Positions 685 to 57,499 of a stretch of 64,000 nucleotides of DNA are shown piece after piece. The notes below the pieces were generated by a model. That model worked only from the letters and a program-made list of their open reading frames with translations, did no database searches and was not told where the DNA came from. This stretch comes from Hydrolagus colliei (Eukaryota), in NCBI GenBank assembly GCA_035084275.1, contig CM068779.1:1488001-1552000 (forward strand), in the 5' to 3' direction. A program made the translations under genes and the position numbers. Within the stretch, counting starts at the first letter, position 1. Each line of letters starts with the position of its first letter.

Positions 685-801
685 TCACTTGAATTTCAAT
701 TCAGCGTAATCTGTTTTATTATCAACAATCTCTGTCATTGGGGCCGTCGGACGTCCTTGCAAAAGTTGGGGTTGGGCATAAACAATTTCATGGTCTCGGT
801 T
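685..801 (-). CDS. Gene 1 terminal exon NRDHEIVYAQPQLLQGRPTAPMTEIVDNKTDYAELKFK*
   Basis: Acceptor ttattcttcttccag, phase 0, TGA at 687-685; IVYAQP and TDYAEL motifs. Confidence 0.85.
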   Translation of the reverse strand, partial: NRDHEIVYAQPQLLQGRPTAPMTEIVDNKTDYAELKFK

Positions 802-3800
802 CTGGAAGAAGAATAAATATCATTTTACATACTGTAACACTCACACATATACAGTATACAGCTTGCATCAACTATTGTACACAAATTGTAGCAAACAGTT
901 CGCTCAAAATACACAATGACTCCTATTTAACTTGTGAAGCATTTGGGTATGTCCTCCTAGAGTCTCCCAGTCAAACATAAAGATTATTATTATAAAGCTA
1001 TTCAAGTGGTACATGCAGAATATGGTAGTTTGTATGGCATTGAAGACTCTCACGTGGCATAACACGGTAAATGTATAAATTGTGGAATCAACCTCCATGT
1101 CCATGCACAGTCTTGTGCGATGTTCCTCAGGGCTCTGTCCTTCAACAACCATATGCTCCCGTCTTCTTTTTGAGGGATTATCATTAGGTGTGGAGTAAGG
1201 AAACTTTCCCAAGGTTTTTCCCTGACCTACCTGGATTCGAACACAGGTCTCACACTTGTAAGGCGAGTGCTCTAACGACTGAACTGCAGTTATCTCCAGG
1301 CTCAGATCATCCAGAGTTCTGCAGCCCATGTCCTCTCCTGCACCAGACTCTGTGACCATATCAGCCTCATTCTTGCCCAGTTCCACTGGATTATCTTTCA
1401 TACAGTTCAAGATCCTGGTTCTCACTTTCAAAGCCTTCCATGACTCACTCCCTGTTCACTACCTCTGCGATCTGCTAATCCACTACCAACCTGCCCATTT
1501 GCTTTATGTCCCCCACGTCCTGCCCCTGTCAGGAAGGCCTTCAGGCACTCTGCTCCACCCTCTGGAACTCCATCCCACGGTCTTCAGCCTCTCCCTCTCC
1601 CTTGCCTCCTTCAAGATCCATCTCAAGACACCTCATCGACCACACCTTCAATCATCCTCATTCCCTCCCTGCCCTGCAGCCTCCCTGATTCCATCCCCCA
1701 GCTTGCTTCCAAAACACTGATTGTGAAAGGTGCTATATATATAGTTTGTTTTTGTCAGCCTGAGTTACAAGTTTGGGGATTCAAGCTCCATGTCGCGAGT
1801 TCAAACTCATATAGTCAAGGTTGACATGAAAACAATAATAATAATAAACATGCCAGTGCGGTGCTGGGGGTGAGCTGCATTGTCAGGGTTGTTGTCCCTC
1901 AGATAACAACAACAATAAATTAACACAGAGTCTTTCACATTAGGAGGACATCCCAAGGTGCTGGACACTCAGGGATCTGTCCCCAAGCTCATGGTTGGGT
2001 TCAGTAGGGGATGAATTTCCAGCCTTCCAAATTGTTTGTCAGAATAATGGGTTAAAAAAGAGAATTAAGTGTCTTACCGCTGTGGCCGTATTGGCTCCTC
2101 TGCTAGATTGTTGCGGAGCTGGAAGACAAAAAAATATGTGTTATTGGACAATGAAACGTTCATAGGAAACTGTGGAACCTGTTTCTTTCAGATGGACATC
2201 CTACTTTCTAATAGGAGCAAAAGGGTTCATATCACATAGATTCTCACAGTCAACATTGAGAAAATAACAGACAAACTGTGCTCATGAAATTCATTTGTGT
2301 AAAGAAATAATTAAGAGTCAAGGCACAGACAATCAGTTCAGTATAAACTGGTATCTTCTGTTTTTAGTTTCCGATAAGGGAAACCTACTAATGGTGAAGG
2401 GAATTTATGGAGGGTAACAGAATATGTGTATAAATGTGAACTGGATGAAATCGGAAGTCATATTTTTAACATGGGCATTAAAATAATTTGGAACATTTGT
2501 AGCCACTTCAATTTTAAACAATATGAAATGTTCTTAATAAAATAGTGCACATAGACATAATAGTTAGTGGACATGAAGTAATTATTCTTTAATGTAGACT
2601 GGTTATTCAATTTAGCAATCATTGCCCTATTTTACAGGTCAGATGCTGTCTCACATCTGTTACAGAGAACAATAGGATATACAAGAATGTCTTCTCTTAC
2701 GACTTCTGTCAACATTAATCCCTGGCAGCTGGTAGATCTTTTTCCTCATTCTCTCCTAAAAATAATGATTTATTTTTGTGCTTGTATTTTTTCTGTTTAA
2801 TTGAGGAAATCGGTTTGAAGTAGATACATTGTTTAGCTGAAAGCTACAGTGGAGGCAAGTGGCATGAGATGTGGCAAGATGCTGGCTAGAGCTCAGTTGT
2901 TTGAAACTGTCTCAATGTGATAAAGAAGAATACTGTAGGAATGACACAAAAAAGTATATGTACAGTAATCACTAAAAAGAATATACTCAGCATTCCTCCG
3001 ACTGAATGAATGGCTTTTCAATTTATAGCTTATAAAAATTTGACTTAAGGTGCCAGTCATTCCGCATCCTTTTTCCAATCTGTTCAAGGCACGTAAGTCA
3101 GTTGACGTCTCAAGAAATATTAATACAGATAAAATGTAGGTTATTGCTGAAATCCTTTTTATTGCCAGTTGGAATTCTCTGTAAATGGAAACCTGTGAGA
3201 GACACATCTAAGAAAAAGCAAGCATTAACTCCGAGCTCCAAACGCTCTGCTCTGCTTTGCAGATGAATCAGATTCTCCTTACCTCCCCGTTTGCTCATTT
3301 GCTAGCCATCTTAAATTGATGCAGTCTAGTCACCAGTAGAAATAATTCCTTCCTATTAAACCACTCATAATTTTAAAGACTTTCATCAGGTCATAGAATA
3401 ATATGGAACCGAAAAAAAGAAAGATTAGTTTACATACCGTATTAACATACTGTGCATATAAGACTATTTCAAAGCAGATTAACAAATGAGGAGATCTAAG
3501 ATCAAAAACAGAACTCGGTCCTTGCACTACATCCACTGTCAGCTGGTTTATAATAATGGCTTTGGTAACTTGCTCTCCGAATGCCCTTCGTCTGTTCAGA
3601 ACAACAACAACAACTTCAATTTATATAGCCCCTCCACGCCGGACGGCGCCTCAGTGTGCTTCACAACAACGGATCCCGGGACCGAGCCAGGGGCAGGGGT
3701 AGAAGCCCCTCACACGGTGCCTCCATGGGATTAAGATCTCACTATTGTAGAGATGCTCAATCAGTTCAATGTTCCAGGCCAAAATGCAGTGCAGTGGTGT

Positions 3801-6800: not shown

Positions 6801-9800
6801 TCAACATGAAAAGAGAAAAGTGAAGTGAAAATTTTATTAATCACAAAGTATGAAGGCAAAAACAGTACAGCACAAAAGGTAAACAATCAGCAGGCTTGAT
6901 TTTCAATAGTTCTGTCTCGTGAAAAGTACACTTGATTTTCTTGGTCATTCTTTTTTTGAATATTAGATTTCCTTTCCCTGATATGATAGGCCACAGCTAA
7001 TCTTATAAAGCCTTCAAGACATCTCGAAGCACTTCACAGAACATACTGCAAAATGAATTGACTATGTTTTGTGGGCCAAATGGGGTTGCCAATGTGCACA
7101 GCAGCGTCCCATAAATGGTAGAGCTACAGATTAAAAGTACTAAAATTGAATATGCAGTTTCATATGTGTTGTTCAATATTGCTGTTGAACTGCAGGCCCA
7201 GGGCATCAATATAAATCTATAGAGTACATCAGCTTCAATTTTTTTCTCTTTCAACAAATATATCCAATTGGAAATCTTATTCTAGGGTTAGCTTTGCTTG
7301 AAGCAAGGAAATAACATTCCTTTAAAAATCATGTTCATATAGAATAACCTGTCCACTCCCTCTGCTCAGCAGTCTGTGGCTTGCTGCACATCCCCCCACC
7401 CGGTCTACCACACCATTGGCACCCTTCAGTCTTTCTGCCACACCCTATGGAACTCTATCCCACATTCTCTTTGTCTCTCTCCCACGCTTGCTTCCTTCAA
7501 GGCATGTATCAAAACCCTCCTCTTCGACTGAGCCTTCAGCCACCTTCCTAACCAACTGCCCACCACCCTCCCCATTCCCGACCCCCCCCCAACTCTGGTC
7601 CAAATCTCTGACTGTCTATTGTTTTGGGACGTCCTTCCGATGTGAAAGGCACTGTACAAATGTAATATTGTATAGAATAATACAAAAACAAACTATGTAA
7701 TAATACAAGACATCTCAAAGCGCTTTGCAAGATATACCATCCCCAAAAAACGCAATAATAAAATTGGTCATTTCAATCCAAGATTGTTTATAGAGGACAC
7801 TGCTGTGAGCAATTGGTTGCCACATTTCACCCACAAATATACAGTCAATTCACTTTACATTATATTCTGTGAAGCGCTTTGAGACATTGATAAGATGTGA
7901 AAAGCACTATATCAAATGCAAGGATTATTATTATTTATTATTATTGTAAAGTGGTGTGACCATATTTGTTTTGTAGGAAAAGATGGCAGTCAATTTGCAC
8001 ACAACAATATCATGCAATCATGGATTCATATGAGCGATTTCATAAAGGAAAATGTCAATGGAGAATATATAACAGAGAGAAATTTGGATATTAAGCAGGA
8101 AATGATTATAACAAATACAGACAGGCATAAAGAATGAGACGTGCTTTACCATTTTCACAATACAATAGCATTAAAATTATGATAGAAATACAGTACGGGT
8201 ATTTACCTTCCTTTTCCTTTGACAAACCAGACTGCAAGTGCAACAATCAGAGCGACAACAACAATACAGGCAATCACTATGCCTGCTATTGCTCCACCGC
8301 TCAATCTGTTTGGGTCTTTTCCTTGGGGACTGTCTGTAAAATAGTAAAGTCCCATATATCAGTCAGATGAGACAACAACAAAATACAACAAAATTACATT
8401 TGTATAGCGCCTTTCACATCAGGAGGATATCCCAAGATGCTGAAGGGTACAATTTCAGATAAATAATGTTACCCAAATGCACATATTTATGAAACTAGTT
8501 GGATTTCAGGACGCTGAGAATTGAATCATCAATGACCTGCATAGAGCTTTCCAGCAGAAAGTTGAATTAATAATAGCTAATATTCTTCACATATGTAAGA
8601 GAATAGATCTAGCAATAGTGTGATTATGCCATATTATATTTCACTCCCTTATTTCCTCCTTCATTCATTTATGATTATCTAGAAATTCATCACAACAACA
8701 ACAAATTACACCTATATAGTGCACTTCACATTGCAAAGATGTCCTAGGGCCCTGGACAGTCAGGGTTTTTTGGAGCCAAGCTGGGAGTTGGGGTCAGGAG
8801 TAGTTGGATGGCAGGGGTAGAGAGGGATGTGGGGGTGGGAGGGTGGCCGAAGAGATTTGGAAAAGGCAAGAGAGGGGGTGAGTAGGAGGGATTGCAGAAT
8901 ATAGTTCCGGAAGGTGAGGACAGAGATGCTGAATTCCCAACCACCAATGGGGAGGTGGACAGTGTGGGACCTGAAGCAGGCCTGTATCTGCCGAGTGTGA
9001 AGGAGCAGACAGGCTGATATGGGGCTAGGTGGTTGGAGAGGTAGGAGAGAGAAGACCGTGGAGAGCTTTGAAAGTGAGAACAAGAGTTTTGGACTATTCT
9101 CTGAGAAATGGGGAGTCAATGAAACTGGACAAGAATGCTTAAGAGTACTAGAGTACCCCATATGCATAAAAAAAGTTTTGTCTGGAATGAAGTTCACATT
9201 CTCTCCTTAGATGAATCCCCGTACCCTGCATAGTCAAGGCTCAGGAGGCTTGGAAACTTCCCATTGCTTGTTCAGTGAAAATAGCACTATCACATTCAAG
9301 GTGAGATCTTGCTTTAGATATGGTCAGCTGGTCCCAATGTTTCAATGATAGCGCTATTAGAAGTGAAGTGCACTACAACACCCAATTTCTAGATGGACAG
9401 GCCTTTCTGATGTCAATTCCTGCACAAATGAGCAGAAAACCTTGAGTGAAGTCAGGGACACTTGTGTGATATTAATGTGCAGTGCTGTAGCTCAGTGGTT
9501 AGAGTGCTCATCTCATCTAGCATGTGAGAGGACCCGGGTTTGATTCCCAGACATGGCAAAACATTAGTCAAATTTCCTTACACACATACCTGTTTACCAA
9601 GCAGTAAGTAGGTACCTGGTTGTTACTCGACTGGCGGATTGCTTTCCAGGGGTAATAAACCCCTTCAAAAACTTATTTAAAAATTATAATTTGGTTACTC
9701 AATTTGTTTTTCTGTCTTACCATCCGTCTATCTATCTTTCTTTCTCTCAGGACTCCCCCTTTCACTATTATCCTTCAAGGCACAGAATAACTATTAATAA

Positions 9801-12800
9801 ACATTGTATACCTTATACCTTATGAGGCCCATTCACACCTTGCGCCAATACAATTTACATTATGTTTAGTATATATCAGGAATCCTGTAGCTCAATGGTT
9901 AGAGCACTCGCCTTACACCTTTGTTCAATACCAGGCAGGCTGAAACCTTGGGCAAGTTTCCTTACTTTCCACATGCCTAATAATAATCCCTCAAAGTAAA
10001 TAAATAATTTGGTCACTCAAAAGTTTGTGGGACACTGTTGTGCACAATTTGCTGCTACATTTTGCCTATAAATATACAGAAAATTCACTTTAAAGTATAT
10101 TCTGTGAAGCGCTTTAAGACATCTAGAAGATGTGAAAAAGCGCCATATTAAAAAATAAGTCTCATTACTATTGTCAAGAGTGCTTCACAGGATATACTGT
10201 AAAGTGTGCTTATATTTTCTGGACAAGTACAAGAACCATTTTGCTTTTAACAATACTTCATAAACAGTTATGAAGTCATTGAATAATTTTATTTTATCCT
10301 AAGTGAGTGGCATTATATAAATACAAGTGCTTGTTGTTGTTGGCTATGACACCCAAAGAGAGAAACTCCATTCTGTTTTCGAATAGTACTGTGGGGTCTT
10401 TAATGTCTACTTGAATATACTTTGATTTAATGTCTCAACCGAAGTACAGCACCTTTAACAAAGCACACCCCAGCACTGCATTAGTGTCAGCTTCAACCCA
10501 CAAAGCGAAAGTGTAACAACCTGAGTGACTGACAATGCATCAATCAAACTCCACCATAGTAACAGAAATGACCAACAAAGATAAGGACAAAAATGAACCC
10601 TAATACTGCAGTGTAATTGTTTCTTTAAGTACATCAGTATGTTCATGACAAGCGGACAGAACATCAGTGGGTCTGGATAAAAGAGTGAAATAGAAATAGA
10701 AATTAGCATACAGGTGTCGTCGGTGAATGATATGGAAACTACTTTTCAACTCTTTTGATTCTGGATACACTGATGCTGATAACTGTTCATAACTTATCAA
10801 ATCATAAAGCCTTATGGTTTTTGAAACACATGGTTATTGCTAAATAATAATAATCCTTGCATTTCATATAGTGCTTTTCATGTCTTCTGGACGTCTCAAA
10901 GTGCTTCACAGAATACTGTAAAGTGAATTGAGTGTATTTTTTATGGACAAAATGTGGCAGTCAATTGCGCACAGCAGTGTCCCACAAACAGTCGTGGATT
11001 GAAGTGACCAATTTATCAGTTTTTTTCAGGGATTATTATTCGGCTATATTATTATTGAATATCAATGCAATCTATTTGCTACCACTAACATTCACAGAAC
11101 AATACATTGAAATAACTCTCAATGTATAAATCAATAAATATCATGATCACATCATGATAGCACATCACAGTAAAGTGATATGTACAGTACATTCACTCAC
11201 CGTTTAACATGACATTCAGTGTTGTCTCATTGTCTCTTAAGGTAATGCTGTTATGAGCCTGACAAGTGTAAATCCCAACATCAGCCTGGGTTATTTTATC
11301 AATGGTGAACATTGGAGTTGTGTGTGACAAAATAGTGCCATTAAATCTCCATTTATACTGAGCTTCTGGGTGTGACGGAGCAGAACAAGACAATGTAAGA
11401 GAGTCTCCAAGTTCTGCTGGGTGTGTCCCAGCGATTGTCAGCTCAGGGACGTCTGGTCCATCTGCAACAGAAGCAAGAATGGCTTCTTTATTACCAGTGA
11501 ACGTAAAGCATAACATTGAAGTCTTATTGTGAGAGGTGGCTGATACTTACAGGCAATGCTCAGTGTATGGCTGCCAGAGTGAGAGCTAAGGGTGTTGTTT
11601 GCCTCACACCGATACGTTCCAACATCCTTCCTAGTCACATTGATGATGGTCAGGGTGTCATTATCCACAGAGATTGTGATCCTGTCACTGCTGTGGAGAG
11701 CTTGCACACCTTTAAACCACAACTGGGACTCAACAGTGCCAGTGACAGCACATGCCATAGTCACAGTGTCAGTGTATTCTATTGGGTTGGGATTGTTAGC
11801 TGTTATGTTGACACTGGTGATTTTTTCTGTAAATAGAATGATAATAGAATCATACAATTATTAACCTGAATTTTTTGAAAAAGTTATACTTTTGTTTTTT
11901 GTTTTAATAGTCCTGTGGCATTCGCCTCACAATGAAAAGTGGGTTCGATTTCCGGGCACGGTGAAACATAAGAAATAGGAACAGTAGGTCATTCGGCTCC
12001 TCATGGCTGATCTTCCAACCTAATTCCACTGACCCACTATTCCCATATTCGATAATAGCTTCAGCTTTTTAAAAAAAGTCGATTGATCCCAGTCTTGAAT
12101 ATATTTCTCAGTCTTGAATATGTTGAATGTTTCTTGTCTTGAAACATTGTGCAAGTTTCGAAGACGTGATAAGGCACTGTATCAAATGTAAGGATTGTTA
12201 TAAAAACTTGATCTGCATGTCACAAAAACAAGATGACAACAGCTGACCTTTATCTGAATTCTAACCCCATCAGAGGTCACTGGAGTCCAAAAAATTGTAA
12301 TATGCCTTATAGAGGAATATGATCAGGAGTGGCTGCTTGGCTTCCTGCATGGAAAAAAGCCAACTTCAGGGTCACCACGAAGGGTGCGACAGCTCCTGTA
12401 CCTTGCACATGTGCAAAGTTTGTACTTTGTTATGTGCAGAGTTTAGTACTTTATTTTGAAAACTAAACCGGAAGCCTTCCTTTCTTGTACAGTCGGGCTT
12501 GGAAGTAAACTCCACATTATAACAGGACACCATTAAAGAGAGTTCCATGGTGCCATTTTTTCAGAAGAAGTCCCAGCTCCTTGGAACATCCTCCACCATT
12601 ATTAATTATTACAGAAAGTTGAAAGGCAATTTACAAATATAGTTTTATTGTTTCCTTCATTTGTATCAATCATTTTTGATTTGCTGTAATAATCAATAAC
12701 TATATTAGTGAACTAACCATTCCGAATACTGATCCAAGAATAATACTGAAAGGAAACTAGTAGCAACTCAACCTAAAAAGTACCTAAAACTGACCTGATA

Positions 12801-15800
12801 ATAATCCTTGCATTTGACATCCCAAATACACTGGAAGAAACCGTAAAGTATATTGACAGTATGTTTTGAGGGCAATACATGACAACCAGTTGCGCACAGT
12901 AGTGTCCCACAAACAATCGTGGGTTGAGTGACCATTCTTTTCAAAAAGGTAATATTACCCCAGGAAAGCAATCCACCAATTGATTAACAGCCAGATTCCT
13001 ACTTACCACTAGGTGAACCGAATATTTGTAGTAAGGAAACTTACCCAAAGTTTTGGCCTAACCCTGGAGTCAAACAGTGGTCTCTCGCTTGCAAGGCGCG
13101 AGCACCCGACCACTAAGCTACAGAAATCCATTGAGCTAATGCTCTCCCATAGCACTAATCGAAAACAGAATGGAGTTCTCTCTCCTGGTATCCCGGTTGA
13201 TGAACCTACAAATAAAATTAGTCACTCATTTGAAGGTAGTTTGTGGAGATTGCTGTGTGCAGAATTGGCTACCGTATTTGCCAACAAATTACACTCATCA
13301 AAGTATCCTATGAACCACTCTGACATGTTTCAATGATGCGATAATGTGCCATACCAAAGGAAACAATTATTATCGTTATTATAATAAATTAAAATTGAAA
13401 CGCCTAATAATTTAGAATTATTTGTCATAGTTTATATAGTTTTAAAACCTGCTTTACTTTCAGATAGACCACCATGGCATTTCTCCAGTCCTGCACATTC
13501 TTGTATATATGGATTGATATTAAAAGAGTATTAAAAGACCCATACCATTAGCAGTTGAATTACTCTGTGATCTAACTTCTTGAGATTTAAAATCACTATT
13601 AAATCACATAACATTCTTTCTGAGGAGGAAGTCTTAAAGCGCTTCATTGGAATTACTGTGAAGGGAAGGGGCTGTGTATTTGTAGGCAAATGCAGCAGCC
13701 CAATTGTGCACAACAAACAGTTACCAGGAAACTCCACTTTAGGGTTCCTCTCTTTTCGAATAGTGCAGTGGGTATGCTGTAATATTCACTGGAAAAGGCA
13801 TATGGCAGCACCTCTGAACATAGGAATATGGGAGCATGAGTAGGCCATTCCACAACAAGAGAATACAAAATTCCCCCAGCACTGCATTGGAGTGTCAGCT
13901 TAGACTAGGAGAGTTCAAGTGGCCAAATTAAAATATTGAATCTACGGATGTTTATAGAACATTGCTGTGGACAAGCTGGTTGCCACATTCATACATTCAC
14001 AGAGTAGCAGCATTTTACAGTAAATCCTATGAAAGTACTTTGAGGCATCTTGACAATGTAATAGGGTGCTATAGCAAACGCAAGGATATATCAAATGCAA
14101 GGATATAATGGATTACACACTGATTACAATGATTTCTCTTGTTGCTGACCTGTACCTTTGGGTTACACTGTTAAAGGCCTGACAAATGTAATTTCCAGCG
14201 TTTATCAAGGTAATATTTATCAGGGTAATATCTACCATGCCCCAAAACTTTGGAATCCCCTCCGTCAACCTCTTCACCTAACCCCCACCTTTCCAATCTT
14301 CAGGTTGTGTCTGAAGACGTTTCTTTTTGACCATGCTTAAGATCACTTCCACACCCCCTGGCTCGGCCTCAGGCTCCGTCATTATGAAGCACTGTGAGAT
14401 ACCACCCAGCATGGAGGGCGCTATATAAATGCAAGATGTTATCGTTGACAACACATCCAACAATCAGCACACATCCCAGCACTTCATTGGAGTGTCAGCA
14501 AGGAGTATATGAACTTCAAGTCCCGACGACAACAACAACAATAACAACAAAATTACATTTATAGCCGTGGGGCTTGAACCTACAACTTTCTGATTCATAG
14601 GTGAGAATGCTACCAACTGAGTCAAGCTGACACATAGTATTGTTCAGGGACACAAATGAACGTTCAAGTTGCATTATCTTTCTGTGAGTTTTGTGTAAGA
14701 CAATGTCCTTTCAGAGAAGGTTCATACAGTTTACTGAATCCCAAATTGCCAAATCATTCATGTCAATGAACAAATCCAGTTTCTGGTCATATTTTCCATC
14801 CATCCATCCACACACACCCTCCCCCAATCCCCAACACTCCTCAGTTCCATGTCCAGCCAGAATTTTCAACAGATTCGGGATGCCCATCATATGTGAAAGT
14901 CCTTGTATAAGTATTAATTGCATTGTGATGGTAAATTGGCAATTTTGTATGAGTGAGTCCTGTTGCTCAGTGGTTAGAGCACTCGCCTCGCAAACAAGAA
15001 ACCTAAGTTTGAGCAAGTTTCCTTACTCCACACACTTCGGTTTACCAGCAGTAAGTAGGAAACCGGTAGTCGATTGGTAGATTTTCTGGGGTAATAATTC
15101 CTTAAAAAATAATAATAAATTGCTCACATTAATCCACAACTGGTTGTGGGACACTGCTGTACGCAATTGGCTGCCATGTTTCATCTGCAAAATATACAGT
15201 CAATTCACTTTACATGATATCCTGTGATGCAATTTAAGTCATCTCAAAGATGTGATATAGCAATATATAAAATGCAAGGATTAATATTATTAAATCCCAA
15301 CCACCACTGTCACAGGATTCGGGTGCTAATCAGCGCTTGTGCATTGTATATTGTGCATCCATTTCACAAGAGCGCAGAAAGCGAAAATGACAGTTAGTTG
15401 TGGTGAAATGAAACTGCCTAATTCTGGGTTAGTCAAAAACACTTATGCATTTACTCTGCCTCCACTGTTGGGTCTTCTCAAGCGCGGAAGGAGCTTTGGA
15501 TTTTCAGAATTCCTTCTCATTTTATCTCAGATCACAATCTTTGTCATTTTATTTAAGCCCCACTCTCTGGGCTACTTAAAGATGTTTTGAGTTAAAAGAT
15601 AAAGTACATAAAGGCTTTTACTTCAGGTAAGAATACCGTTTTACATACCTACAACACGGATTCCGATGGTTGCTGCGCTATACCTTTGTGTTACACTGTT
15701 AAAGGCCTGACAAGTATAATTCCCAGTGTTCTTCAGGGCAAAATTGGGAATGAAAAGGTCTGAGCCATTTTGTAGAAAAGAGGAAGTATTGCAATACCAT

Positions 15801-26533: not shown

Positions 26534-26541
26534 CCTGGCCT

Positions 26542-26670
26542 CAGCCTGTGTCCTGGTCTCTGGTCACTGAGCAGCCTGTGTCCTGGTCTCTGGTCACTGA
26601 GCAGCCTGTGTCCTGGTCTCTGGTCACTGAGCAGCCTGTGTCCTGGTCTCTGGTCACTGAGCAGCCTGTG
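26542..26670. repeat. 30-bp tandem repeat x4.3 (cagcctgtgtcctggtctctggtcactgag) just upstream of gene 1 ATG
   Basis: Four perfect units plus a 9-nt partial; paralogue at 47499-47627 has one substitution. Confidence 0.95.
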
Positions 26671-26730
26671 CTGGTTACACTCAGTCAGTCAGTAGAGTTT
26701 TCTCTTCTCCCAGCTCTGCACTTATTGAGC

Positions 26731-26741
26731 AAATAGGAAGT
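26731..26741 (+). promoter_or_regulatory. Candidate ETS/PU.1-type site (aaataggaagt) ~200 bp upstream of ATG; copy at 47688-47698
   Basis: Motif match and position only. Confidence 0.3.
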
Positions 26742-27404
26742 AGGGAGTGGGTGGGGACTGACTGCAGTGTGGTTCCTGGCCAGTGATATCAAATGTCTCG
26801 GGTATTTCAAGTCAGAACAGGGTTTGCACAAAGCCCAGGAGCCTGGACACTGTGACCTGTTAGACAGTAACAAGGCAGCAGTTTGGATCTCTGTTCAGCT
26901 TGTTTTAAAGTTAGTTTCTAAAATATAAAATACATTTAATAAACATGATGTTAATCCTTTATTTGATACAGTCCCTGATCCCATCTTTGAAAAGCTTCAC
27001 AGGATCTACTGTAAAGTATAGTAGTGTCTGTTTGTTTTGTGGCGAAACACTAAACCCAGCAGCCAATTGGGCACAGCAGTGTCCCACACACAGGCAAAGT
27101 CATGGTAACTATTGCACTTGATACACAGCCTTTCCTGTCAGGAGAACATTTCAAACTGCTTCACAGGATTTTTTACAGTAAATTATAGAATGTGGCAGGC
27201 GATGTAGGCACAGTGACACACACTGGCATGAAGTGTACAACCATAACGCTGAACAACAAAAACATTACATTTGTATATTGCCTTTCACGGTGGGAGAACA
27301 GCCCAAGATGAATGACAGCTCCCTGACTGACCAACAAACGGCTTAATGTCATTATTCAACACAGGGTTAGAAATCAAATGTGAGTCACTGTTTACCTGTT
27401 TACT

Positions 27405-47490: not shown

Positions 47491-47498
47491 CCTGGCCT

Positions 47499-47627
47499 CA
47501 GCCTGTGTCCTGGTCTCTGGTCACTGAGCAGCCTGTGTCCTGGTCTCTGGTCACTGAGCAGCCTGTGTCCTGATCTCTGGTCACTGAGCAGCCTGTGTCC
47601 TGGTCTCTGGTCACTGAGCAGCCTGTG
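47499..47627. repeat. 30-bp tandem repeat x4.3 upstream of gene 2 ATG
   Basis: Duplicate of 26542-26670. Confidence 0.95.
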
Positions 47628-50480
47628 CTGGTTACACTCAGTCAGTCAGTAGAGTTTTCTCTTCTCCCAGCTCTGCACTTATTGAGCAAATAGGAAGTAG
47701 GGAGTGGGTGGGGACTGACTGCAGTGTGGTTCCTGGCCAGTGATATCAAATGTCTCGGGTATTTCAAGTCAGAACAGGGTTTGCACAAAGCCCAGGAGCC
47801 TGGACACTGTGACCTGTTAGACAGTAACAAGGCAGCAGTTTGGATCTCTGTTCAGCTTGTTTTAAAGTTAGTTTCTAAAATATAAAATACATTTAATAAA
47901 CATGATGTTAATCCTTTATTTGATACAGTCCCTGATCCCATCTTTGAAAAGCTTCACAGGATCTACTGTAAAGTATAGTAGTGTCTGTTTGTTTTGTGGC
48001 GAAACACTAAACCCAGCAGCCAATTGGGCACAGCAGTGTCCCACACACAGGCAAAGTCATGGTAACTATTGCACTTGATACACAGCCTTTCCTGTCAGGA
48101 GAACATTTCAAACTGCTTCACAGGAGTTTTTTACAGTAAATTATAGAATGTGGCAGGCGATCTGGGCACAGTGACACACACTGGCATGAAGTGTACAACC
48201 ATAACCCTGAACAACAAAAACATTACATTTGTATATTGCCTTTCACGGTGGGAGAACAGACCAAGGTGAAGTGAATGACAGCTCCCTGACTGACCAACAA
48301 ACGGCTTAATGTCATTATTCAACACAGAAACTACAGGGTTAGAAATCAAATGTGAGTCACTGTTTACCTGTTTACTGTCCTGTAGCTCAGTGGTGAGAGC
48401 ACTCACCTTACAAGCAAGAGACTAGGTTTGATTCCCGGCAGGTCACAATAAAATCTTGGGCAAGTTTCCTTTCTCGACATGTCTAATAATAATCCCTCAA
48501 AAAAAATTGTCATTTTCAATCCACGACTGTTTGTGGGACACTGCTGCGTACAATTGGTTGCCACCCACAAATATACAGTCAATTCTCTTTACAGTTAATT
48601 CTGTGAAGCGCATTGAGACGTCTAGAAGACGTGAAAAGCACTATATCCCATGCAGGATGATTATTATGATGAAGCTTTGTGTGATCTTACACTGTGTAAC
48701 AGCCCCACAGTCTGGCAGATCAGTGCTATTACACAATAATAATAATAATAATCCTTGCATTTGATATCGCCCTTTTCACATCTTATCAACGTTATGCAAA
48801 TGCCCTGCTGGTCGGTCTTCCCAATTCTTCCCTCCACAGGCTACAGATAATCTAGAATATTGTGTCCTTTACCGTTCCAAACTCCATGACCCCATCTTCC
48901 CCATCCTCACCTGTCTCCATTGGCTCTCCATCATTCAGAAGATCCGATTCAAGATACTGGTGTTCACATTTAAAGCCCTTCACAACCTCACCCCACCCTA
49001 CATCCGTGACCTCCTATCCCCTTACCAACCTGCCCGCCCCCTCCGCTCAGCAGGCTCTGGCCTGTTCCAAGTCTTCTGACCCACACGCCACACAAGTGGC
49101 CACTCTCTCCGTCACTCTGCCTTCAACGTCTGGAACTCCATCCCGCAGTCACTCCGCCTCGTTCCCTCCCTGGCCTCCTTCAAGTCTCGCCTCAAGACTC
49201 TCCTCTTCGATGGACCCATCGCAACTCTTAATCCCCCTTCCCTCCCCCACCCACCCCCCTGGCCTCAGCTCGGGTCTGATGCAGTAACTGTCCAGAGCCT
49301 TGGGACGTCCTTCTGACGTGAAAGACGCTATACAAGTATAATTTTGTTGTTTTGTTGTATATTCTGTAAAGCGCTACCGGACGGTTCAAAGAAGAGAAAA
49401 ACGCTTTATCCAATGCAAGGATTATTGTTATTGTATTCTGTGAAGCGCTGAGACGTACCAAGATATGGTAAGGTGTTATATCAAATGCTCCAATTATCAT
49501 TCATCATTTTCCAGCTCTTCTACAATGAAACAACCAGTGATTTCAGCCATTTTAATTCTGTAGCCTGATTATTGATACAATATAAAAATACTAAATGACA
49601 TTTACAGCGTCTTTTACATCTGGAAGACAACCACAACAAAATTACATTGATACATGTTGGAAGGACGTCCCAAGGTGCTGCACAGTTAGGGATTTGGATC
49701 CGAGCTGAGGATCAGGAGGGGTGGAGGGCAGTGAGGTTGGAGGATGGAAGGTGACCGAAGGCATGGTTAAAGAGAGGGTCTTAATTCTGGACTTGAAAGA
49801 GGCAAGGGAGAGGGTGAGGACAAGGTCAGTGTCTGTAGAGCAGAGGAACGGACATGTAGGTGAAGCTTTAATAGGTGGCAAAGGTAGTGAGGAAGAAGGC
49901 CATGGATAGCTTTAAAGAGAGTTCTCATAGTCAAGCCTGGATTTAATGAAAGCGTGAATAAGGGTTTCAGCACCTGAGGGCAGAGACAGTGGTGAAGGTG
50001 GGCAATGTTGTGGAGGTGGGGCAAGGCAGGATGGGTCATGGCACAGATGTAGAGTTTAAAGTACAGTTGAGGGTTGAACAAGACACCAAGGCTCAGTGAC
50101 GGAGAGAGTAGATCCATGGATAGTGATCACTGGCAGCGCCTGAGGTGAGGAAGTGCTGATGGGAGCCAAGCAAGAGGTCCTCGGTCTTGTTGACGTTCAA
50201 TTGGAGAAAGTCAGCTCTCAGCCAGGACTTGATGTCTGACAGACAATCCATCAGGACAGCAGTGATCCTGGAGTCGAGGCTGGGGGCAGAGAGATAGAGT
50301 TGACCACAGGCCTGTGGATGATATCACACAGCAGGACACCACATTAGAATTACGCTGCCAGAGTTCATGAACACAGAGAAACACTGGGTGATACAAGCTG
50401 CCAGACTTGTTGGGGAGATGAATAAGCCGCACATCAGCACTTCGCATCTCCAGTCCTCGCACAGTCAGCCATTCAGCCAA

Positions 50481-53400
50481 TTATCCAGCCATTTTGCCTC
50501 TCAGGTCACTGTACAGGGACTGATCGTGTGGCTGTAAAGTCTGTCCAGAGAAGACAGGAAGAGAGTGTCACTAGTGTCACAGGGTGTAACAGTTATCTGA
50601 GGGTAAATAATAATAATAATCCTGGCATTTGACGCAGCGCCTTATCATATTGGTAAACAGTTAAAGTGCTTCACAGGAAATACTGTCAAGTGTAGTGACT
50701 GTGTGTTTAGTGGGGGAAATGCAGCAACAATTGAGAAAAGCGATGCACTAACAAACAGCAGTGGATTGAGTGACCAAAATATGTATATATTATTTAAGGC
50801 ATTGTTACCCCCAGAAAGTGATCCACCAATCGACCCCCAAGCAGTTTCTTTGTTACTGCTGGTAAACAGAGGTGTGTGAGTGTGAGTGCATCTGTTTCTG
50901 TCTGTGTGTGTTTTTATGGAATAAGAAAACTTCCCTAAGGTTTCGCCCTGACCTGTAGCACCAGGGAATCGAACCCAGGTCTTCTCGTTTGTGAAGCGAG
51001 TGCTCTAAGTACTGAACTGCGAGTGCTCTAACCACTGGGCTACAGAACACCACCAGTGTCCCAAGGTGTGGCAGTTATCTGGGGGACAATAGAAATCAAG
51101 GAGCCTGGTGTAGAGAGTGTGACGGAGTGACTGTCAGCAGCATGTATACAGTGAGCAACATAGACACACAGCTGACCCCTCTGTGGGCAGCAGATCTCAG
51201 CAGAGGGTTGGCAGAGGTCTGGAGGAGGGCACTTTGCCATCCTGGCCACTAATACATGGTGCGGGGCTTAGGACAGAGGCTACAAGAGGATGTTTGGCTT
51301 CCCACACAATAAAATATTAATTATCTCTCACCGTGTAGGTGGCATTGGGATCAGAGGCCTCAGTGCGTTCCTGTGTAAGAAAGTGAGACAGTCAATATAG
51401 ACAAGCAGTAGATAGGAAGAGTTGTGCTGAAGGCACAGAGAGCAACATTAACCTGACTTTGTATTTCACATCTGATTAACAACATCATCATAGATTGTGG
51501 TGACAGCACAGAACTGTGTCTGCGTCTGTGCTGGTGCTCGCTCCCCCACTGGAGCTCTCTACTCTAACCCCATTCCCTGTTGTGTTCTATCATGTCTGTT
51601 CTGGTGCTCTCTGAGACAGTATCTTAATGAAGGGCGCTATATAAATACACATTATTATTGCTGTGCTGTGTTTGAAGCTAGACTGACACATCAGAGGAGT
51701 ACTGAGGGAGACAGCAATGTCCATACATTATACAGTAAACATCTGTCTGCCTGTTGTGATGGTTCATGTGGAATGATATAGAACATACAACAAACACACA
51801 CCATTTAGTCCAACATGTTCATGGAGGTGTTTATATTCCAGCTGTGCCCCACCCCTGCTGTGATCCCCTCTCCTACTCTCTATTCCCTTCTCCCTCATCC
51901 ATCCAATATGGTTCAACTTAATAACAACAACAAATGTCAGTTACACAGTCTCTTTCATGTCAGGAGGAATGTCCTAAGATACTGTCCTAAGACAGTCTGG
52001 GATCTGCACTCGAGCTGGGGATTGGGATCAGGAGGGAGTGGGGGGCAGGGAGAGTCGGGGTAGGAGGGTGACCAAGGGCGGGATTGCTTGAAGAGCAGGT
52101 AATTGAGACAGCTCTTGAGAAGGAGGCGAGGGAGACTGAGGGATACAGTTCCAGAGGGTGGTGGCAGAGACGCTAAAGGCCTGTCTGTCTACGGTGTGGC
52201 GGGTGAGGCAGGACACATGAAGCAGGCTAGAGCTCTCTGAGGACGGCGTGCACAGTTTCTAGGGGGTTAGGAAATCACAGAGACCAAGGTGAAGAACAGG
52301 AACTTGAACTTTAATTTGCTGATGCTTCTTACATCAACCACATCAACTTCCTCGTTCTCTCGTCCCCCTGTGTCCAGCGGTTCCTCCTAATCTCCCTCAC
52401 TATCTGGCTTTGATGTCCTGTGGCTCAGTGGTTAGAGCACTCTCCTCGCAAGTGACAGAACCTGGGTTCGCTTCGTGGCCAGGGTGAAATGTTAGGGAAG
52501 ATTCACACATGCGCACACACACGTGCACACACACACAGGCCTCTGTTTTCTTAACAGTGGGTAAGAGCCAGGTTCTTAGTCGATTGGAGGACTAATTTCA
52601 GGACTAATCTGTTCAAAAAACTATTTGGTCACTGAACCCACTTCTGTTCGTGGGATGCTGTTGCTCGCAATTGGTTGCTGTGTTTCACCTAAAATATATA
52701 CAGTGAATTTCCTTACAGTATATCCTGTGAAGCGCTTTCAGACATCTAAAAGATGTTATAAGGAACAGGATTATTATTATCGAGGTTCCTCTTAAAACTG
52801 CTAAAACTTTTCACTTCGACTACAGTTTCCTCATTCTCTCTGCCCTCTATGTAAACAAGTTCCCCCTAAACACCCTTATGATCTGCTATCTCAATATATC
52901 TCTCAACATCCACCTTATTGAATTTTGCACAGTTTTTAACTCCTCTATCAGAGTTCACACTCCTGGTTCTCATCTTGAAATCCCTGCTCACCCCCATAAC
53001 AATAATAATCCTTGTCATTGATATAGAACCTTATCATGTTGTTAAGACATCTCAGCACTTCATAGGAAATACTGTAAAGTGTAGTGACTGTGACAGCCAA
53101 TTGCACACAGCAGGGCCCCACAAATCGTCCTAGATTGAGAGACAAATTATTATTTTAAAAAGTCATTACTACCCCTGGAAAAGCAATCCACCATTTCACT
53201 AACAACAACAACAAAATTACACCTTGTATACGTCACAAGGCACAAATGTGTTCCTACTTACTGCTGGTGAACAGAGCACTTGTGTGTGCATGTCTCTGTG
53301 AGGAAACGTGCCTAAGGTTTCGCCCTGACCTGCCTGGGTATCGAACCCACTTGTGAGGCAAGTGCTCTAATCACTGAGCTACAGGATCCACAAACAGAGC

Positions 53401-56400
53401 CAGAAGGCGAGTGAGTGAGAGACATGCGGAGAAGCTGTAGAGGTCTGGATCTTGTCAGGAGAAGAATAGCACTAACCTGGGGCCTGGCTGAGAATGAAAC
53501 ATTCTCATAGGTCACTGCTGAGCTCTGAGCAGTTGGGGTGGAGCTTTCTGCAGGAAGATTGGGGAGAATGGGAGCAGGGTTAGGAGGAGAATTCATTCCT
53601 CTTACAATTGTGTTTATCATTAATATTACTGTAATAGTCCTTTAACAAACGGGAGGCAGGAACTTACCGGCTTGTTTTCTCAGAGACAGACGTCTTTTAT
53701 AGACGAATAATGACATTATAGCGATTAGAATTAGGATTAGAATCACAGCCACTGGCACACCAACACTAATCCCCAAATCGACGGCCACACTGGGATTGTT
53801 TACGTGATCTGTTTAGTGAGGAAATTATTTGATATAAATGAGTATGTGGGAAGACACTCAATTATCAGCTTTTTCTGCTTTAGTTTAAATAAAACATGGA
53901 AATCAGGGAAGATATAATATATATAATACAGTACAACTTTACATTGGTACAGTTCCAGCTCTAGTCTTCACATCATGCTCAACAGTACAGGCTGGGAACC
54001 CGAGTTGCGCGTGTGAGGTGAGAGGTGTGAGGATGGGAAAGATCATTGAAAGCCAGACAGAGAGATAGGACTTCAGACAAAAGCTTGAATGAGCTAAGGG
54101 AGGGAACAAGTGGCAGTTACAGAGATGGGGCCAAAACGGCTGAACGACCATCAGACATTGGGGGGGGGGATGGACTTTTTCCCAGTGGGTGTCCTCCTTG
54201 ACCTGTCTGCTGCGTTCGACACAGTCGATCACACCATCCTCCTCCAACGTCTTTCCTCAACCTTCAAGGCACAGTCCTTGACTGGTTCCATTCCTACCTG
54301 ACCCACCGTTTACACTTTGTATCTTCCAATGGTTTTTCCTCAAACCCCCGCACAGTTTCTCACGGCGTCCCTCAGGGCTCTGTCCTCGGCTCCCTCCTTT
54401 TCACCATTTATACGCTCCCTCTGGGCGATGTCATCCGCAAACATGGGGTAAATTTCCACATGTATGCGGACGACACCCAGCTGTACCTTTCTGCCTCATC
54501 CCTCAACCCCCAGACCATCGATGTTCTGACAGCATGTCTGTCCGACATCGAGTCCTGGACGAGTGAAAACTTCCTGCAATTGAACGTGAGTAAGACCGAG
54601 GCCCTCCTGATCGGCTCAAGCCAGCGCCTCCGCACATCGGGCGCTGCCAGCCTCAACATGCAAGGCTGTACTCTCCACCTCACAAAGCCAGTCAGGAACC
54701 TCGGCATCATGTTCGACCAAAAACTCTCCTTCCTCCCCCACATCCGTGCCTTGACCGGCACCGCTTACTTCCACCTGCGCAACATTGCCAGGCTCCGCAA
54801 TTATCTTACCCCCCACGCTGCTGAAACACTCATGCACGCGTACATCACCTCAAGGCTGAACTACGGAAACTCTCTCCTCGTCGGCCTCCCCAGTTCCTCC
54901 AATCACAGGCTTCAGGTCATCCAAAACTCTGCTGCCCGTGTATTATCCCGCACCCGCCTCCGCGACCATATAACCCCCATCCTCGCCCATCTCCATTGGC
55001 TCCCCATCCTCCAGAGGATCGAGTTCAAGATCCTCGTCCTCACCTTCAAGGTCTTACATGGCCTTGCCCCGCCCTATTTAACCAATTTACTCTCCCCCTA
55101 CAAGCCCACCCGGACCCTCCGTTCAGCAGGACTTGGCCTGCTCCAAGCCCCCCGCCCGAACCGCCCCACCATTGGAGGCCGGGCCTTCAGTTTTTCTGCT
55201 CCGACCCTGTGGAATTCCATCCCCCAATCCCTCCGTCTCGTTTCTTCTCTTTCCTCTTTCAAGGCCGGTTTGAAGACTTTCCTCTTCGACCGTGACTTTT
55301 CTTCCACCCCGAATTTTTCGACCTCCCCTATGTGTTTCACCCCTCCCCGTACACTCCCCTCCCAGCTCGGGTCACACGCCTCCTGTGCAGCGCCTTGGGA
55401 TGTTCTCCCGACGTGAAAGGCGCTTTACAAGTGTAATTTGTTGTTGTGTTGTTGTTGTTGTCTGACATATGAGAAACCATCACAGTGATTAAGAGGCACC
55501 AAACCAAGCACATAATCCACCTACACATAGAAATCCCAGAGATAGATATTGGAATGGATTGCACACCCTCTCTCTCTCTCTCTGGAGGGACTGCTGATTC
55601 CAGGAAGTATTAGGCGCTGGTTGGCGAGAGTCAAGGCTTGAGGGGAGCACACATTGTGCATTATGGTAACTGCTGGAGTCTAACCAGCTAAACTTGTGGT
55701 TTCCAACCTTTTTTTTTGCTGCGACCCAAATTAGCCACCAACAGGTCCTTCCGACTCTTAGGGTGCAACATCGCGACCGAAGTGAAGCTCAGCCAAGACG
55801 ATATCTCTGTCTCTTTTGTGGACTCAGCGCAACTCGTAAGTATGGTCTTTCATAGAAATTGGACGGTGGTGTCGCCACGGACACTTTTCAGCACTAAAAA
55901 AGCATTGTCAGCGTTTAAAAAACAACAAAAAATTTCTAATGATCCTTCATGACCCTGATTTGGATTGGGACCCGAGGTTGGGAACCACTGAGCTAAACCC
56001 ACATAGCTTGCCATTGATATCTCTGTCTGGCAAGATTTCAGTGCCTCGGGACATCCTCCTTACGTGAAAAGCATTCTCTCACTGTAATATTTTTGTTGTT
56101 GTTGTTTCCCGCCGCTGCTCCAGCTAGGACCACCCTACACATTAGGACTTTGACTTGCAGGATTAACAGCAGCTGAGTGGGAAGATTCCCTTCCACCAGT
56201 GACTGGTCTGTTCAACCAAGGCCTGCTGGTGAGCCAGGCTGGGCTGTGCTGCCATCAGCAGAGAGAGCTCTGCAATACAAAACACCTGGCTCAGGAACTG
56301 GCACAGACGTCTGGCTCGATTCTCATATTCTGCTGCCAAAACATGTCACCTTGAGGCCTTTTCAGTTTACGATATGATACAAGATGTGAAAGAGCTCAAA

Positions 56401-57422
56401 TCAAGGCGAGTTTCTCCTGAGACCCCACACCCAGACCAAGTTTGGAAGCCACCCCAGTGGCTTCCAAACTTGAAATACAGACGCCTGCCCTGACTCAGCT
56501 AAATTTTTGTTGCTCCCCCCCCCCCCACTCCACCTTCACATTGAATAATTTTTGCAAATGATAACAGCAAATTCAATATTTTCTTTACCTGTGTTATTAA
56601 ATATCAACAAAAAACATTAATTTGTTAGAACACTAACAAATTCACAGTTTGGAAACCACTGGTATACACTATAAATAACTTATTGATAAACTGGTGAGTT
56701 AATGCAGATATCACCTCAGTGATTTGTCATTTACAAGATCAGGCTGTTCAAGGTACAAAGCCAAGAGCTGAGGGAACAGTGCAGTACATCACTCACCCTT
56801 TAACATGACATTCAGTGTTGTCTCTTTGTCTCTTAAGGTAACGCTGTTATGAGCTTGACAAGTGTAAATCCCAAGATTAGTCTGGGTTATTTTATCAATG
56901 GTGAACTTTGGAGTTGTGTGTGACAAAATAGTGCCATTAAATCTCCATTTATACTGAGCTTCTGGGTGTGACGGAGCAGAACAAGACAATGTAACAGTGT
57001 CTCCAAGTTCTGCTGGGTGTGTCCCAGCGATTGTCAGCTCAGGGACGTCTGGTCCATCTGCAACAGAAGCAAGAATGGCTTCTTTATTACCAGTGAACGT
57101 AAAGCATAACATTGAAGTCTTATTGTGAGAGGTGGCTGATAATTACAGGCAATGTTCAGTGTATGGCTGCCAGACTGAGAGCTAAGGGTGTTCCTTGCCT
57201 CACACCGATACGTTCCAACATCCTTCCTAGTCACATTGATGATGGTCAGGGTGTCATTATCCACAGCGATTGTGATCCTGTCACTGCTGTGGAGAGCTTG
57301 CTCACCTTTAAACCACAACTGGGACTCAACAGTGCCAGTGACAGCACATGCCATAGTCACAGTGTCAGTGTATTCTATTGGTTTGGGATTGTTAGCTGTT
57401 ATGGTGACACTGGTGATTTTTT
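50481..57422 (-). CDS. Gene 3, 3' part: A-B-TM-YENV-ITAM; leader and N exon not in window
   Basis: join(57422-57147,57057-56797,53808-53668,53547-53477,51370-51332,50540-50481); TM and tail match gene 2; A-exon donor is gtaatt. Confidence 0.78.
54185..55460 (+). mobile_element. Duplicate of the L2 LINE at 33215-34490
   Basis: Identical 318-aa ORF 54460-55416. Confidence 0.93.
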
Positions 57423-57499
57423 CTGTAAATAGAATGATAATAGAATCATACAATTATTAACCAATTGTTATCCTGAACTAGGGAAATTCACTCTCAGGT

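Follow-up and report, generated by a model that had tools for sequence, protein, structure and literature searches.

The 64-kb window analysed here, which is the whole stretch from position 1,488,001 to 1,552,000 of contig CM068779.1 (assembly GCA_035084275.1, Hydrolagus colliei), carries three CEACAM genes and repeats, and nothing else. The genes, designated g1, g2, and g3, are arranged head to tail, and the minus strand carries every Ig-like open segment. Probably, g1 and g2 form a paired receptor set, one member being of the inhibitory type and the other bearing an ITAM (immunoreceptor tyrosine-based activation motif), with g2 born as a chimera in a tandem duplication. A paired system had been proposed in a first-pass annotation of the window and is borne out by the near-identical ectodomains—100% identity from domain A1 to domain B2 and 91% in the N domain—that are joined to a tail with an immunoreceptor tyrosine-based switch motif (ITSM) in g1 and to an ITAM tail in g2.

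The gene models were assembled using AG/GT sites and a phase-1 rule for the Ig exons. The g1 gene consists of 15 exons (26533→685, minus strand) coding for 975 residues in the order leader, N, A1, B1, A2, B2, A3, B3, A4, B4, transmembrane (TM) exon, and four cytoplasmic exons; the ectodomain comprises a cysteine-free IgV N domain and eight IgC2 domains. The g2 gene consists of 12 exons (47490→29509, minus strand) coding for 765 residues in the order leader, N, A1, B1, A2, B2, A, B, a 141-nt TM exon, and three cytoplasmic exons, and Pfam assigns one V-set and six Ig domains to it. Both models have canonical AG/GT sites and no internal stops. The third gene, g3 (57422→50481, minus strand), is cut at its 5′ end by the end of the window: the first exon inside is an A exon, and the four tail exons (TM, YENV, 39-nt, and last exon) are identical to those of g2. 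The A exons measure 276–279 nt and the B exons 261–264 nt, and all are of phase 1-1 in the three genes. The outer limits given by the first-pass annotation coincide with the last base of the g1 stop codon (685) and the AG acceptor of the g3 A exon (57422), and its range of 39–141 nt for the signaling exons agrees with the sizes of 141, 71, 39, and 60 nt in g2 and g3. No further Ig exons of g3 occur between 57.4 and 64 kb, where only a co-linear similarity of 75–81% to the g1 N-to-A1 intron is seen; g3 is therefore probably a short N-A-B-TM-ITAM gene with its N exon just past position 64000.

As judged by their closest relatives, g1, g2, and g3 belong to the CEACAM family of the immunoglobulin superfamily. 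A cysteine-free N domain is a hallmark of CEACAMs. The 103-residue N exons of g1 and g2 lack cysteine and keep R59, D78, G80, and Y82. In a database search with g2, the best matches are chondrichthyan "CEACAM5-like" models at 42–49% identity (Heterodontus, Stegostoma, Scyliorhinus, Pristiophorus, Heptranchias, and Carcharodon), followed by chondrostean (sturgeon, paddlefish), teleost, reptile, and marsupial CEACAMs; CD22, hemicentin, and HEPACAM2 rank far below. The best sequence matches in the PDB are CEA, CEACAM1, and CEACAM6 with E values from 3e-79 to 1e-30 (CEA 2.7e-79, CEACAM1 6e-41), compared with 2e-19 for titin. The CEACAM-like identity read from the bare sequence thus agrees with the database and PDB matches and with the cysteine-free N domain. 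The AlphaFold model of the N domain features an IgV fold (predicted local distance difference test score, pLDDT, of 94). Foldseek ranks the IgV domains of TIGIT, nectin, and PD-L1 first (E about 5e-9), and the N domains of CEACAM6/8 appear at ranks 39–48 (E about 3e-7)—the fold is a generic IgV fold and uninformative on family. The nearest relatives are models of the holocephalan Callorhinchus milii, XP_042202057/8, and in the tree of N domains, support for a grouping of the window genes with C. milii is 100/100. The cartilaginous-fish origin suspected at first reading is borne out, the source being a holocephalan or a very close ally. No database protein came from this genome itself. Conserved synteny neighbors of CEACAM genes are ATP1A3, PAFAH1B3, CNFN, LIPE, and XRCC1 (PMC3628338).

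The origin of g2 can be read from a direct repeat of 19.3 kb (17753–36991 versus 38720–57931) with 98.5% identity. Since each copy pairs, on the minus strand, an A-B-TM-YEN-ITAM half with a leader-N-A1-B1-A2-B2 half across an intergenic region, g2 is, by its layout, a chimera of a g1-type 5′ half fused intron to intron, and in frame, to a g3-type 3′ half. A tandem duplication of ∼21 kb, with one end in the intron lying upstream of the g3-type A exon and the other in the intron between B2 and A3 of g1, would generate this arrangement: its junction would fuse the promoter, leader, N, A1, B1, A2, and B2 of g1 to a g3-like A-B-TM-YEN-ITAM half, and because all Ig exons are of phase 1-1, the fusion would be in frame. 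Upstream of their leaders, g1 and g2 are separated by seven substitutions only over ∼3 kb (99.8% identity), so that g2 has, judging from this flank, inherited the promoter region of g1. Between the copies lies ∼0.85 kb of junction-specific sequence. It holds, at 37841–37762, a truncated B1-like exon, of which the last 78 nt and an intact donor are left, now located in the g2 B2-to-A intron; the 5′ part of this exon relic is replaced by a short interspersed repeat, and the remainder of the junction resembles a B1-to-A2 intron, with 75–87% identity to the g1 B1 region. At its right edge, the duplication coincides with a ∼0.5-kb repeat that is also present in inverted orientation at 58933–59459. 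Upstream of g3, this repeat forms an inverted pair (57496–58006 versus 58933–59459), and its third copy (36544–36997) is closer to the inverted copy (94–98%) than to its tandem counterpart (about 92%). Copy II alone carries an insertion of ∼0.6 kb (38120–38719).

The divergence between the copies is a mosaic: 0–1 mismatches occur over 28000–35000 and 20500–22000, and patches diverged by 1–6% are found at the left edge (17753–19000), at 24000–26500 including the N exon, and at 35000–36991 including the last A and B exons. Such a pattern would result if, after the duplication, patches in the N exon, in the last A-B cassette, and at the duplication's left edge had diverged or been converted. The presence of 7 kb with 0–1 differences in the duplicate copies fits the very young age that had been ascribed to the pair. 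The same long runs without mismatches could also stem from an assembly artefact, in which two haplotypes, or a repeat that was collapsed and then re-expanded, were wrongly set in tandem as the 19–20-kb copies and only a g3-like gene and g1 are real, with g2 not existing; the position of the diverged patches in N and A-B exons, frequent sites of polymorphism in immune genes, would go along with it. However, the window contains no runs of N, the duplication edges are 5–6% diverged, which is high for alleles, and the g2 cassette (A exon and start of B, 11808–11399) shares variants with g1 and not with g3, its supposed allele. Given in addition the junction-specific sequence and the copy-specific insertion, which are no simple abutment, a false duplication is unlikely.

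The membrane-proximal A-B cassette of 685 bp shows that exchange goes beyond the duplication itself, as g1 carries it as well. The flanks of the cassette are unalignable between g1 and g2/g3, so that the tract is sharply bounded, and the variant sites inside it form alternating blocks, common to g1 and g2 and then to g1 and g3. This indicates repeated gene conversion between g1 and both ITAM genes; the cassette would be undergoing homogenization among all three. An older internal duplication of g1 relates A3-B3 (15282–16871) to A2-B2 (18288–20047) at 85–89% DNA identity, with 14 and 7 residue differences.

Leader, A1, B1, A2, and B2 of g2 are protein-identical to g1, and the differences concentrate in the N domain (9 of 103 residues) and in the last B domain (10 of 86), with 1 of 91 residues in the last A domain—as the first-pass annotation had described. 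In the N exon, 13 of 312 nt are substituted, which is 2.5 times as dense as in the diverged patch around it (Fisher p=0.008) and 4.5 times as dense as in the remainder of the duplicate. In the N-domain model, eight of the nine changes map to the C/C′/F/FG face: S36R in strand C; K40N, Q41E, and L44V in strand C′; I83N, N85R, and T87I in strand F, where they alternate and, hence, point to one side of the strand; and N92S in the FG loop. The GFCC′ sheet is the adhesion and pathogen-binding face in mammalian CEACAMs. The changes between g1 and g2 would, hence, lie mostly on the presumed binding face.

Tyrosine motifs were assigned by the patterns [SIVL]xYxx[IVL] for the immunoreceptor tyrosine-based inhibition motif (ITIM), TxYxx[VI] for the ITSM, and YxxL/I-x6-8-YxxL/I for the ITAM. 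The tail of g2 and g3 features a YEN motif (VTYENV) and, 22 residues later, a canonical ITAM. The different TM segment, the YENV motif, and the ITAM are present where they had been reported at first reading, the ITAM being formed by splicing: its YTTL is not contiguous in the DNA but joined from the 39-nt exon (30398–30360) and the last exon (29568–29509), both of phase 0. The Mustelus asterias genome has the ITAM-splitting intron at the same point and phase (..SNYM/gt...ag/ELQLQDQSVYNEL versus ..ATYT/gt...ag/ here). The g2-type tail aligns over its whole length with annotated shark and ray proteins. A profile search with this tail against 1.84 billion representative proteins yields 53 proteins, 27 of them at E<=1e-10, which by their NCBI names are CEACAM-like and come from Callorhinchus, about 15 elasmobranch species, Amia, and Polyodon. 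The elasmobranch matches include Carcharodon (named "CEACAM4-like"), Scyliorhinus, Heterodontus, Hemiscyllium, Chiloscyllium, Cetorhinus, Pristiophorus, Pristis, Mobula, Hypanus, Hemitrygon, Narcine, Amblyraja, and Rhinoraja (named "CEACAM20-like"). The YEN-plus-ITAM module is found in sturgeon as well. In an alignment from the window species to the alligator, whose protein P0097 has the tail VYENL...TYQTLQLGAGDLYQEL, Y-E-N and the two ITAM YxxL motifs are invariant (eight of eight species), and no other column is. The sequence pYxN is a Grb2-type SH2 motif. The ITAM exons do not belong to a foreign gene, as the A-B-TM-YEN-ITAM layout is annotated in Mustelus, Pristis, and Callorhinchus. By tblastn with the C. 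milii and g1 tails, neither a hidden CEACAM1-like TM exon in g2/g3 nor ITAM exons downstream of g1 were found. Just upstream of the 39-nt ITAM exon, an open segment (30526–30480 and 51498–51452, minus strand) encodes an ITSM-like TxYxxV in phase 0 after the YENV exon. As an alternative inhibitory last exon of g2/g3, this segment was rejected, since its acceptor is purine-rich and it has a counterpart in no other species' ITAM-type tail; it could be a chance occurrence or a relic.

The cytoplasmic exons of g1 encode ..REKSGSNHQNGVTMDATGN / PPSQTEYATVQRKEQNPQ / PQQSSRGANTATA / NRDHEIVYAQP..NKTDYAELKFK and contain three tyrosine motifs: TEYATV, which is a canonical ITSM, IVYAQP, and the C-terminal TDYAEL. 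Every one of these exons aligns with the long tails of Heterodontus, Heptranchias, Pristiophorus, Pristis, and Hemitrygon, including the 56-nt exon C1, which has weak splice scores; no variation is seen in this alignment of sharks and rays at QTEYA, at the VYAQP tyrosine, or at KTDYA. The TM segment LSGGAIAGIVIACIV matches those of sharks, rays, and Anolis, and its motif LSGGAIAGIVI recurs in an Anolis CEACAM1-like protein whose tail has VQYSTL and TIYSEI. Read-through at the g1 TM donor (8207) gives ..VKGKGR followed by an immediate stop, and short-tail isoforms ending in ..RASAI and ..RTGAI are annotated in several shark genes. The g1 gene may make long and short forms, as CEACAM1 does.

With these tails, and going by what is established for SH2 domains and immunoreceptors, the two receptors are predicted to signal in opposite directions. 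Ligands bound by the common ectodomain would lead, via the phosphorylated tyrosines of g1, to recruitment of SHP-1/2 or of SAP-type adaptors; via the ITAM of g2/g3, the same ligands would engage Src-kinase and then Syk/ZAP-70, plus Grb2 at pYEN. The same or similar ligands would, hence, evoke opposite outputs from g1 and g2. It is this predicted SHP/SAP route of g1 versus the Syk/ZAP-70 and Grb2 route of g2 that would make the two a paired inhibitory/activating (endocytic) set, like those of tetrapod CEACAMs. Because the promoter region of g1 is common to g2 and the long ectodomain is kept, g2 is better described, on its gene structure, as a freshly formed activating (endocytic) counterpart than as a phagocyte-restricted decoy in the manner of CEACAM3, which binds adhesins directed at CEACAM1. 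The CEACAM3-type decoy class was rejected for g2, which has an N domain and six IgC2 domains instead of a single N domain and carries the 5′ flank of g1; likeness to this decoy is a functional analogy at most.

Several observations weigh against the paired reading or narrow it. The ∼3-kb near-identical 5′ flank of g1 and g2 argues against a cell-type-restricted decoy like CEACAM3. The 7-kb stretches at 100% identity are of a kind that assemblers may mishandle. The splice from B2 to A in g2 and those of the small tail exons are predicted. Positive selection on the N domain was considered and rejected, the ratio of nonsynonymous to synonymous differences (pN/pS) being about 1.2 and not significant. 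A strict ITIM is absent from the g1 tail, all three tyrosines having been checked; TDYAEL has T at −2. Lacking a [SIVL]xYxx[IVL] motif, g1 is therefore classed as an ITSM-bearing receptor, inhibitory-type by homology, and not as an ITIM receptor—of the "ITSM/ITIM-type" tail of the first-pass annotation, the ITSM part stands and the ITIM part does not. The other ITAM-type proteins have a CEACAM1-like TM, and no homologue of the g2 TM segment is detectable in them; moreover, VTYENV of g2 also fits the ITIM pattern. The last two points are the starting point of another explanation, according to which g2 is real but not activating: a silent or decaying newborn gene, a receptor for endocytosis or Grb2, or one that uses VTYENV as an ITIM. 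Reptile ITAM-type tails have an "endocytic" tyrosine motif 17–21 residues before the ITAM, some fitting the ITIM pattern (PMC13278318), and the duplication is so recent that there was little time for selection. However, the reading frame and all 22 splice sites of g2 are intact, and the canonical ITAM is invariant over >400 million years. Moreover, other species carry A or Q at −2, so the ITIM fit of VTYENV is not conserved; the conserved feature at the upstream tyrosine is, across the aligned tails, Y-E-N (pYxN), and not the ITIM −2 position. A g2 without activating function is accordingly rated as rather unlikely.

A further alternative takes the locus as one complex transcription unit, in which exons of g3, g2, and g1 are joined by read-through or alternative splicing into forms with multiple N domains or alternative 3′ ends. 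The common 1-1 phase of the N, A, and B exons would permit this, and C. milii offers two precedents: the model XP_042202057 runs from L-N-A-B of one unit into N-A-B-A-TM of its neighbor, and a single gene combines the CEACAM1-like TM, C1, ITSM cassette, and C3 with subsequent SEYSNL and YENI exons. In the window, on the other hand, the units have their own leader exon with ATG and their own stop-containing last exon, with AATAAA within 0.6 kb after the stop, g1 and g2 each have a complete, near-identical 3-kb upstream region, and shark and ray models feature separate inhibitory and ITAM genes, which leaves a single unit highly improbable and separate paired genes as the preferred reading. In the C. 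milii contig WEZY01001957.1, the CEACAM1-like TM, C1, ITSM exon, C3, SEYSNL, and VYENI exons follow in a row at 30457–36286; the NCBI model leaves out the ITSM exon (PPSQTEYATVQRKEQNLQ), which the genome contains, and XP_042202058 ends in the ITAM. This exon order suggests that the C. milii gene may pick or combine inhibitory and activating motifs by splicing.

The pairing extends to other cartilaginous fish. In a maximum-likelihood tree of 32 N domains labeled as "inhibitory/short-tail" or "ITAM", the labels are fully interspersed, with nine changes, the same as for shuffled labels. In five species, inhibitory-type and ITAM-type N domains are sisters within the species, with within-pair identities of 91% in the window species, 89% in Pristis pectinata, 94% in both Mustelus asterias and Pristiophorus japonicus, and 82% in Carcharodon carcharias. 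Each tail type is conserved across species, unlike the N domains, which group by species. N domains that are sisters within species, combined with tails that are conserved between species, are in these trees and alignments the classic signature of paired receptors, the similarity of N being kept by recent duplication or gene conversion. CEACAM models of both types, ITAM and inhibitory, are present in the NCBI annotation of about 19 other chondrichthyan species. The description of the system as "hidden" was, hence, overstated with respect to these public models; those of C. milii, however, are partial and merge neighboring genes.

CEACAM homologues have been reported in cartilaginous fish (PMC3628338, PMC4079198). 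Paired CEACAM receptors are on record for mammals (PMC2832619), for Xenopus (PMC5112662), and for reptiles (PMC13278318). According to the authors of the Xenopus study (PMC5112662), fishes had yet to be studied for paired receptors, and we found no paper on paired CEACAM receptors in chondrichthyans. Both tail modules—the CEACAM1-type ITSM tail and the YEN-plus-ITAM tail—are present in chondrichthyans, and holocephalan-like, shark, and ray genomes contain inhibitory and ITAM genes whose N domains are sisters. The locus further indicates that new pairs can arise in one step, by a tandem duplication with breakpoints in phase-compatible introns. A tentative reading, to which we give somewhat less than even weight, is that both modules are ancestral, that paired CEACAMs with co-evolving N domains date to the common ancestor of jawed vertebrates, and that the pairs are continually renewed per lineage. 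Equally tentative is the notion that this renewal proceeds by segmental duplication, exon-cassette conversion, and intronic fusion, with the window as one birth nearly caught in the act. If this holds, g2, as the activating partner, would still have the promoter and five identical exons in common with g1, its inhibitory parent, and would have begun to diverge mainly on the GFCC′ binding face. Two additions, as read from the sequence, are the clear one-step origin of a pair by intron-to-intron tandem duplication and evidence that paired CEACAMs extend down to the base of the jawed vertebrates. How paired immune receptors originated becomes testable in the earliest-branching lineages of this group. 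The result agrees with current models and overturns none.

Table. Positions of exons and duplicated segments in the window (aa, amino acids)
Feature	Position	Strand	Remarks
g1 leader exon	26482..26533	-	phase 1 out
g1 N exon	25978..26289	-	IgV-like, cysteine-free
g1 A1 exon	22609..22887	-	
g1 B1 exon	21542..21805	-	
g1 A2 exon	19758..20036	-	
g1 B2 exon	18655..18918	-	
g1 A3 exon	16582..16860	-	older internal duplicate of A2
g1 B3 exon	15649..15912	-	older internal duplicate of B2
g1 A4 exon	11551..11826	-	within 685-bp A-B cassette common to g2, g3
g1 B4 exon	11201..11461	-	within 685-bp A-B cassette common to g2, g3
g1 TM exon	8207..8333	-	127 nt, phase 2 out, CEACAM1-like (LSGGAIAGIVIACIV...)
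g1 cytoplasmic exon C1	4717..4772	-	56 nt, EKSGSNHQNGVTMDATGN; frame shifts if skipped
g1 exon C2	4394..4450	-	57 nt, ITSM TEYATV
g1 exon C3	2078..2118	-	41 nt
g1 last exon	685..801	-	..EIVYAQP..NKTDYAELKFK, stop
g1 685-bp A-B cassette	11182..11866	-	97% identical to 35824-36507 and 56779-57462
g2 leader exon	47439..47490	-	identical to g1
g2 N exon	46935..47246	-	13 nt / 9 aa different from g1
g2 A1 exon	43575..43853	-	identical to g1
g2 B1 exon	42508..42771	-	identical to g1
g2 A2 exon	40725..41003	-	identical to g1
g2 B2 exon	39623..39886	-	2 synonymous differences from g1
g2 last A exon	36192..36467	-	
g2 last B exon	35842..36102	-	
g2 TM exon	32698..32838	-	141 nt, not CEACAM1-like
g2 exon C1	32507..32577	-	71 nt, VTYENV (conserved YEN motif)
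g2 exon C2	30360..30398	-	39 nt, ..DPNATYT, first half of first ITAM YxxL
g2 last exon	29509..29568	-	60 nt, rest of ITAM, stop
g3 A exon	57147..57422	-	first g3 exon in window
g3 B exon	56797..57057	-	
g3 TM exon	53668..53808	-	identical to g2
g3 YENV exon	53477..53547	-	identical to g2
g3 39-nt ITAM exon	51332..51370	-	identical to g2
g3 last ITAM exon	50481..50540	-	identical to g2
Duplication copy I	17098..36997 (about)	.	g2 3′ half, intergenic region, g1 5′ half
Duplication copy II	37845..57937 (about)	.	g3 3′ half, intergenic region, g2 5′ half
Junction-specific sequence	36999..37841	-	∼0.85 kb, found nowhere else in either copy

The remaining sequence is rich in repeats. LINE-like open reading frames (long interspersed nuclear element; ORFs) lie in CEACAM introns at 33490–34446, 54460–55416, and 38116–38830, all on the plus strand; a 318-residue LINE-like ORF gives a weak match to the C-terminal part of RVT_1, below the Pfam cut-off, and the piece at 38120–38719 is the insertion confined to copy II. 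A purine-rich minisatellite at 59919–60435 has units of 16, 24, and 40 nt with 63–77% matches and causes artefactual long minus-strand ORFs. A short interspersed repeat translating to ..LYSAFHVRRTSQG.. is scattered in the introns of all three genes, for example, at 58555–58637, 17377–17462, 7850–7935, and 27612–27693.

The human CEACAM1/CEACAM3 system of mammals (PMC2832619) likewise features an inhibitory long-tailed gene beside an ITAM gene with a highly similar N domain. Mammalian CEACAM1-related genes (PMC2832619) share the cysteine-free IgV N domain and the phase-1 A and B IgC2 exons, and, as in CEACAM1-type genes, a cytoplasmic exon of length 3n+2 sets the long-tail frame—56 nt here and 53 nt in tetrapods. 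In contrast, CEACAM3 consists of N only, whereas g2 keeps six IgC2 domains. CEACAM3 is, furthermore, primate-specific, and the g1/g2 pair is not orthologous to it. Compared with mammalian ITAM CEACAMs, the g2 ITAM is canonical and preceded by YEN, and the tail has three exons, as in reptiles, instead of four. The pair here would stem from duplication and fusion of a whole segment including the promoter, instead of from conversion of the N exon.

The pairs of Xenopus and reptiles (PMC5112662; preprint PMC13278318) are similar in being species-specific combinations of ITIM/ITSM and ITAM genes with N domains most similar within species, in their signs of gene conversion, in the three cytoplasmic exons, and in a tyrosine motif about 20 residues before the ITAM. 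The three cytoplasmic exons and the upstream tyrosine motif were described for reptile CEACAM1-related ITAM genes by Zimmermann and Kammerer (PMC13278318). The window pair differs from those of Xenopus and reptiles in its chondrichthyan lineage, which according to these papers had not been looked at for paired receptors, in the converted tract, which is here the membrane-proximal A-B cassette, and in the N exon, where the young duplicate has diverged most.

The C. milii models XP_042202058.1 ("CEACAM1-like") and XP_042202057.1 ("CEACAM2-like"), both partial, are identical to the window genes in 15 of 17 leader residues, deviate by one residue (V/A) in the ITAM tail, have closely similar A and B domains, and resemble g1 in the CEACAM1-like TM and the exons C1–C3. 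The N domain, however, is only about 58% identical, the ITAM exons follow the CEACAM1-like TM and C1–C3 in one gene that lacks a g2-type TM exon, and an equivalent 21-kb duplication is not seen on that contig. The elasmobranch ITAM models (Carcharodon XP_041032829 "CEACAM4-like", Pristis P0085, Mustelus P0040, and Rhinoraja) share the sequence YEN[IFV] followed by DxxSxY(M/T)xL-x7-YxxL, the same YxxL-splitting intron, and N domains that are 82–94% identical to the inhibitory-type gene of the same species. They differ by a CEACAM1-like TM with an extra juxtamembrane exon, by fewer Ig domains (often N only, or N-A-B-A), and by an overall identity of <50% to the window proteins. Taken together, the locus is a real but expected case of an arrangement known in frogs, reptiles, and mammals.

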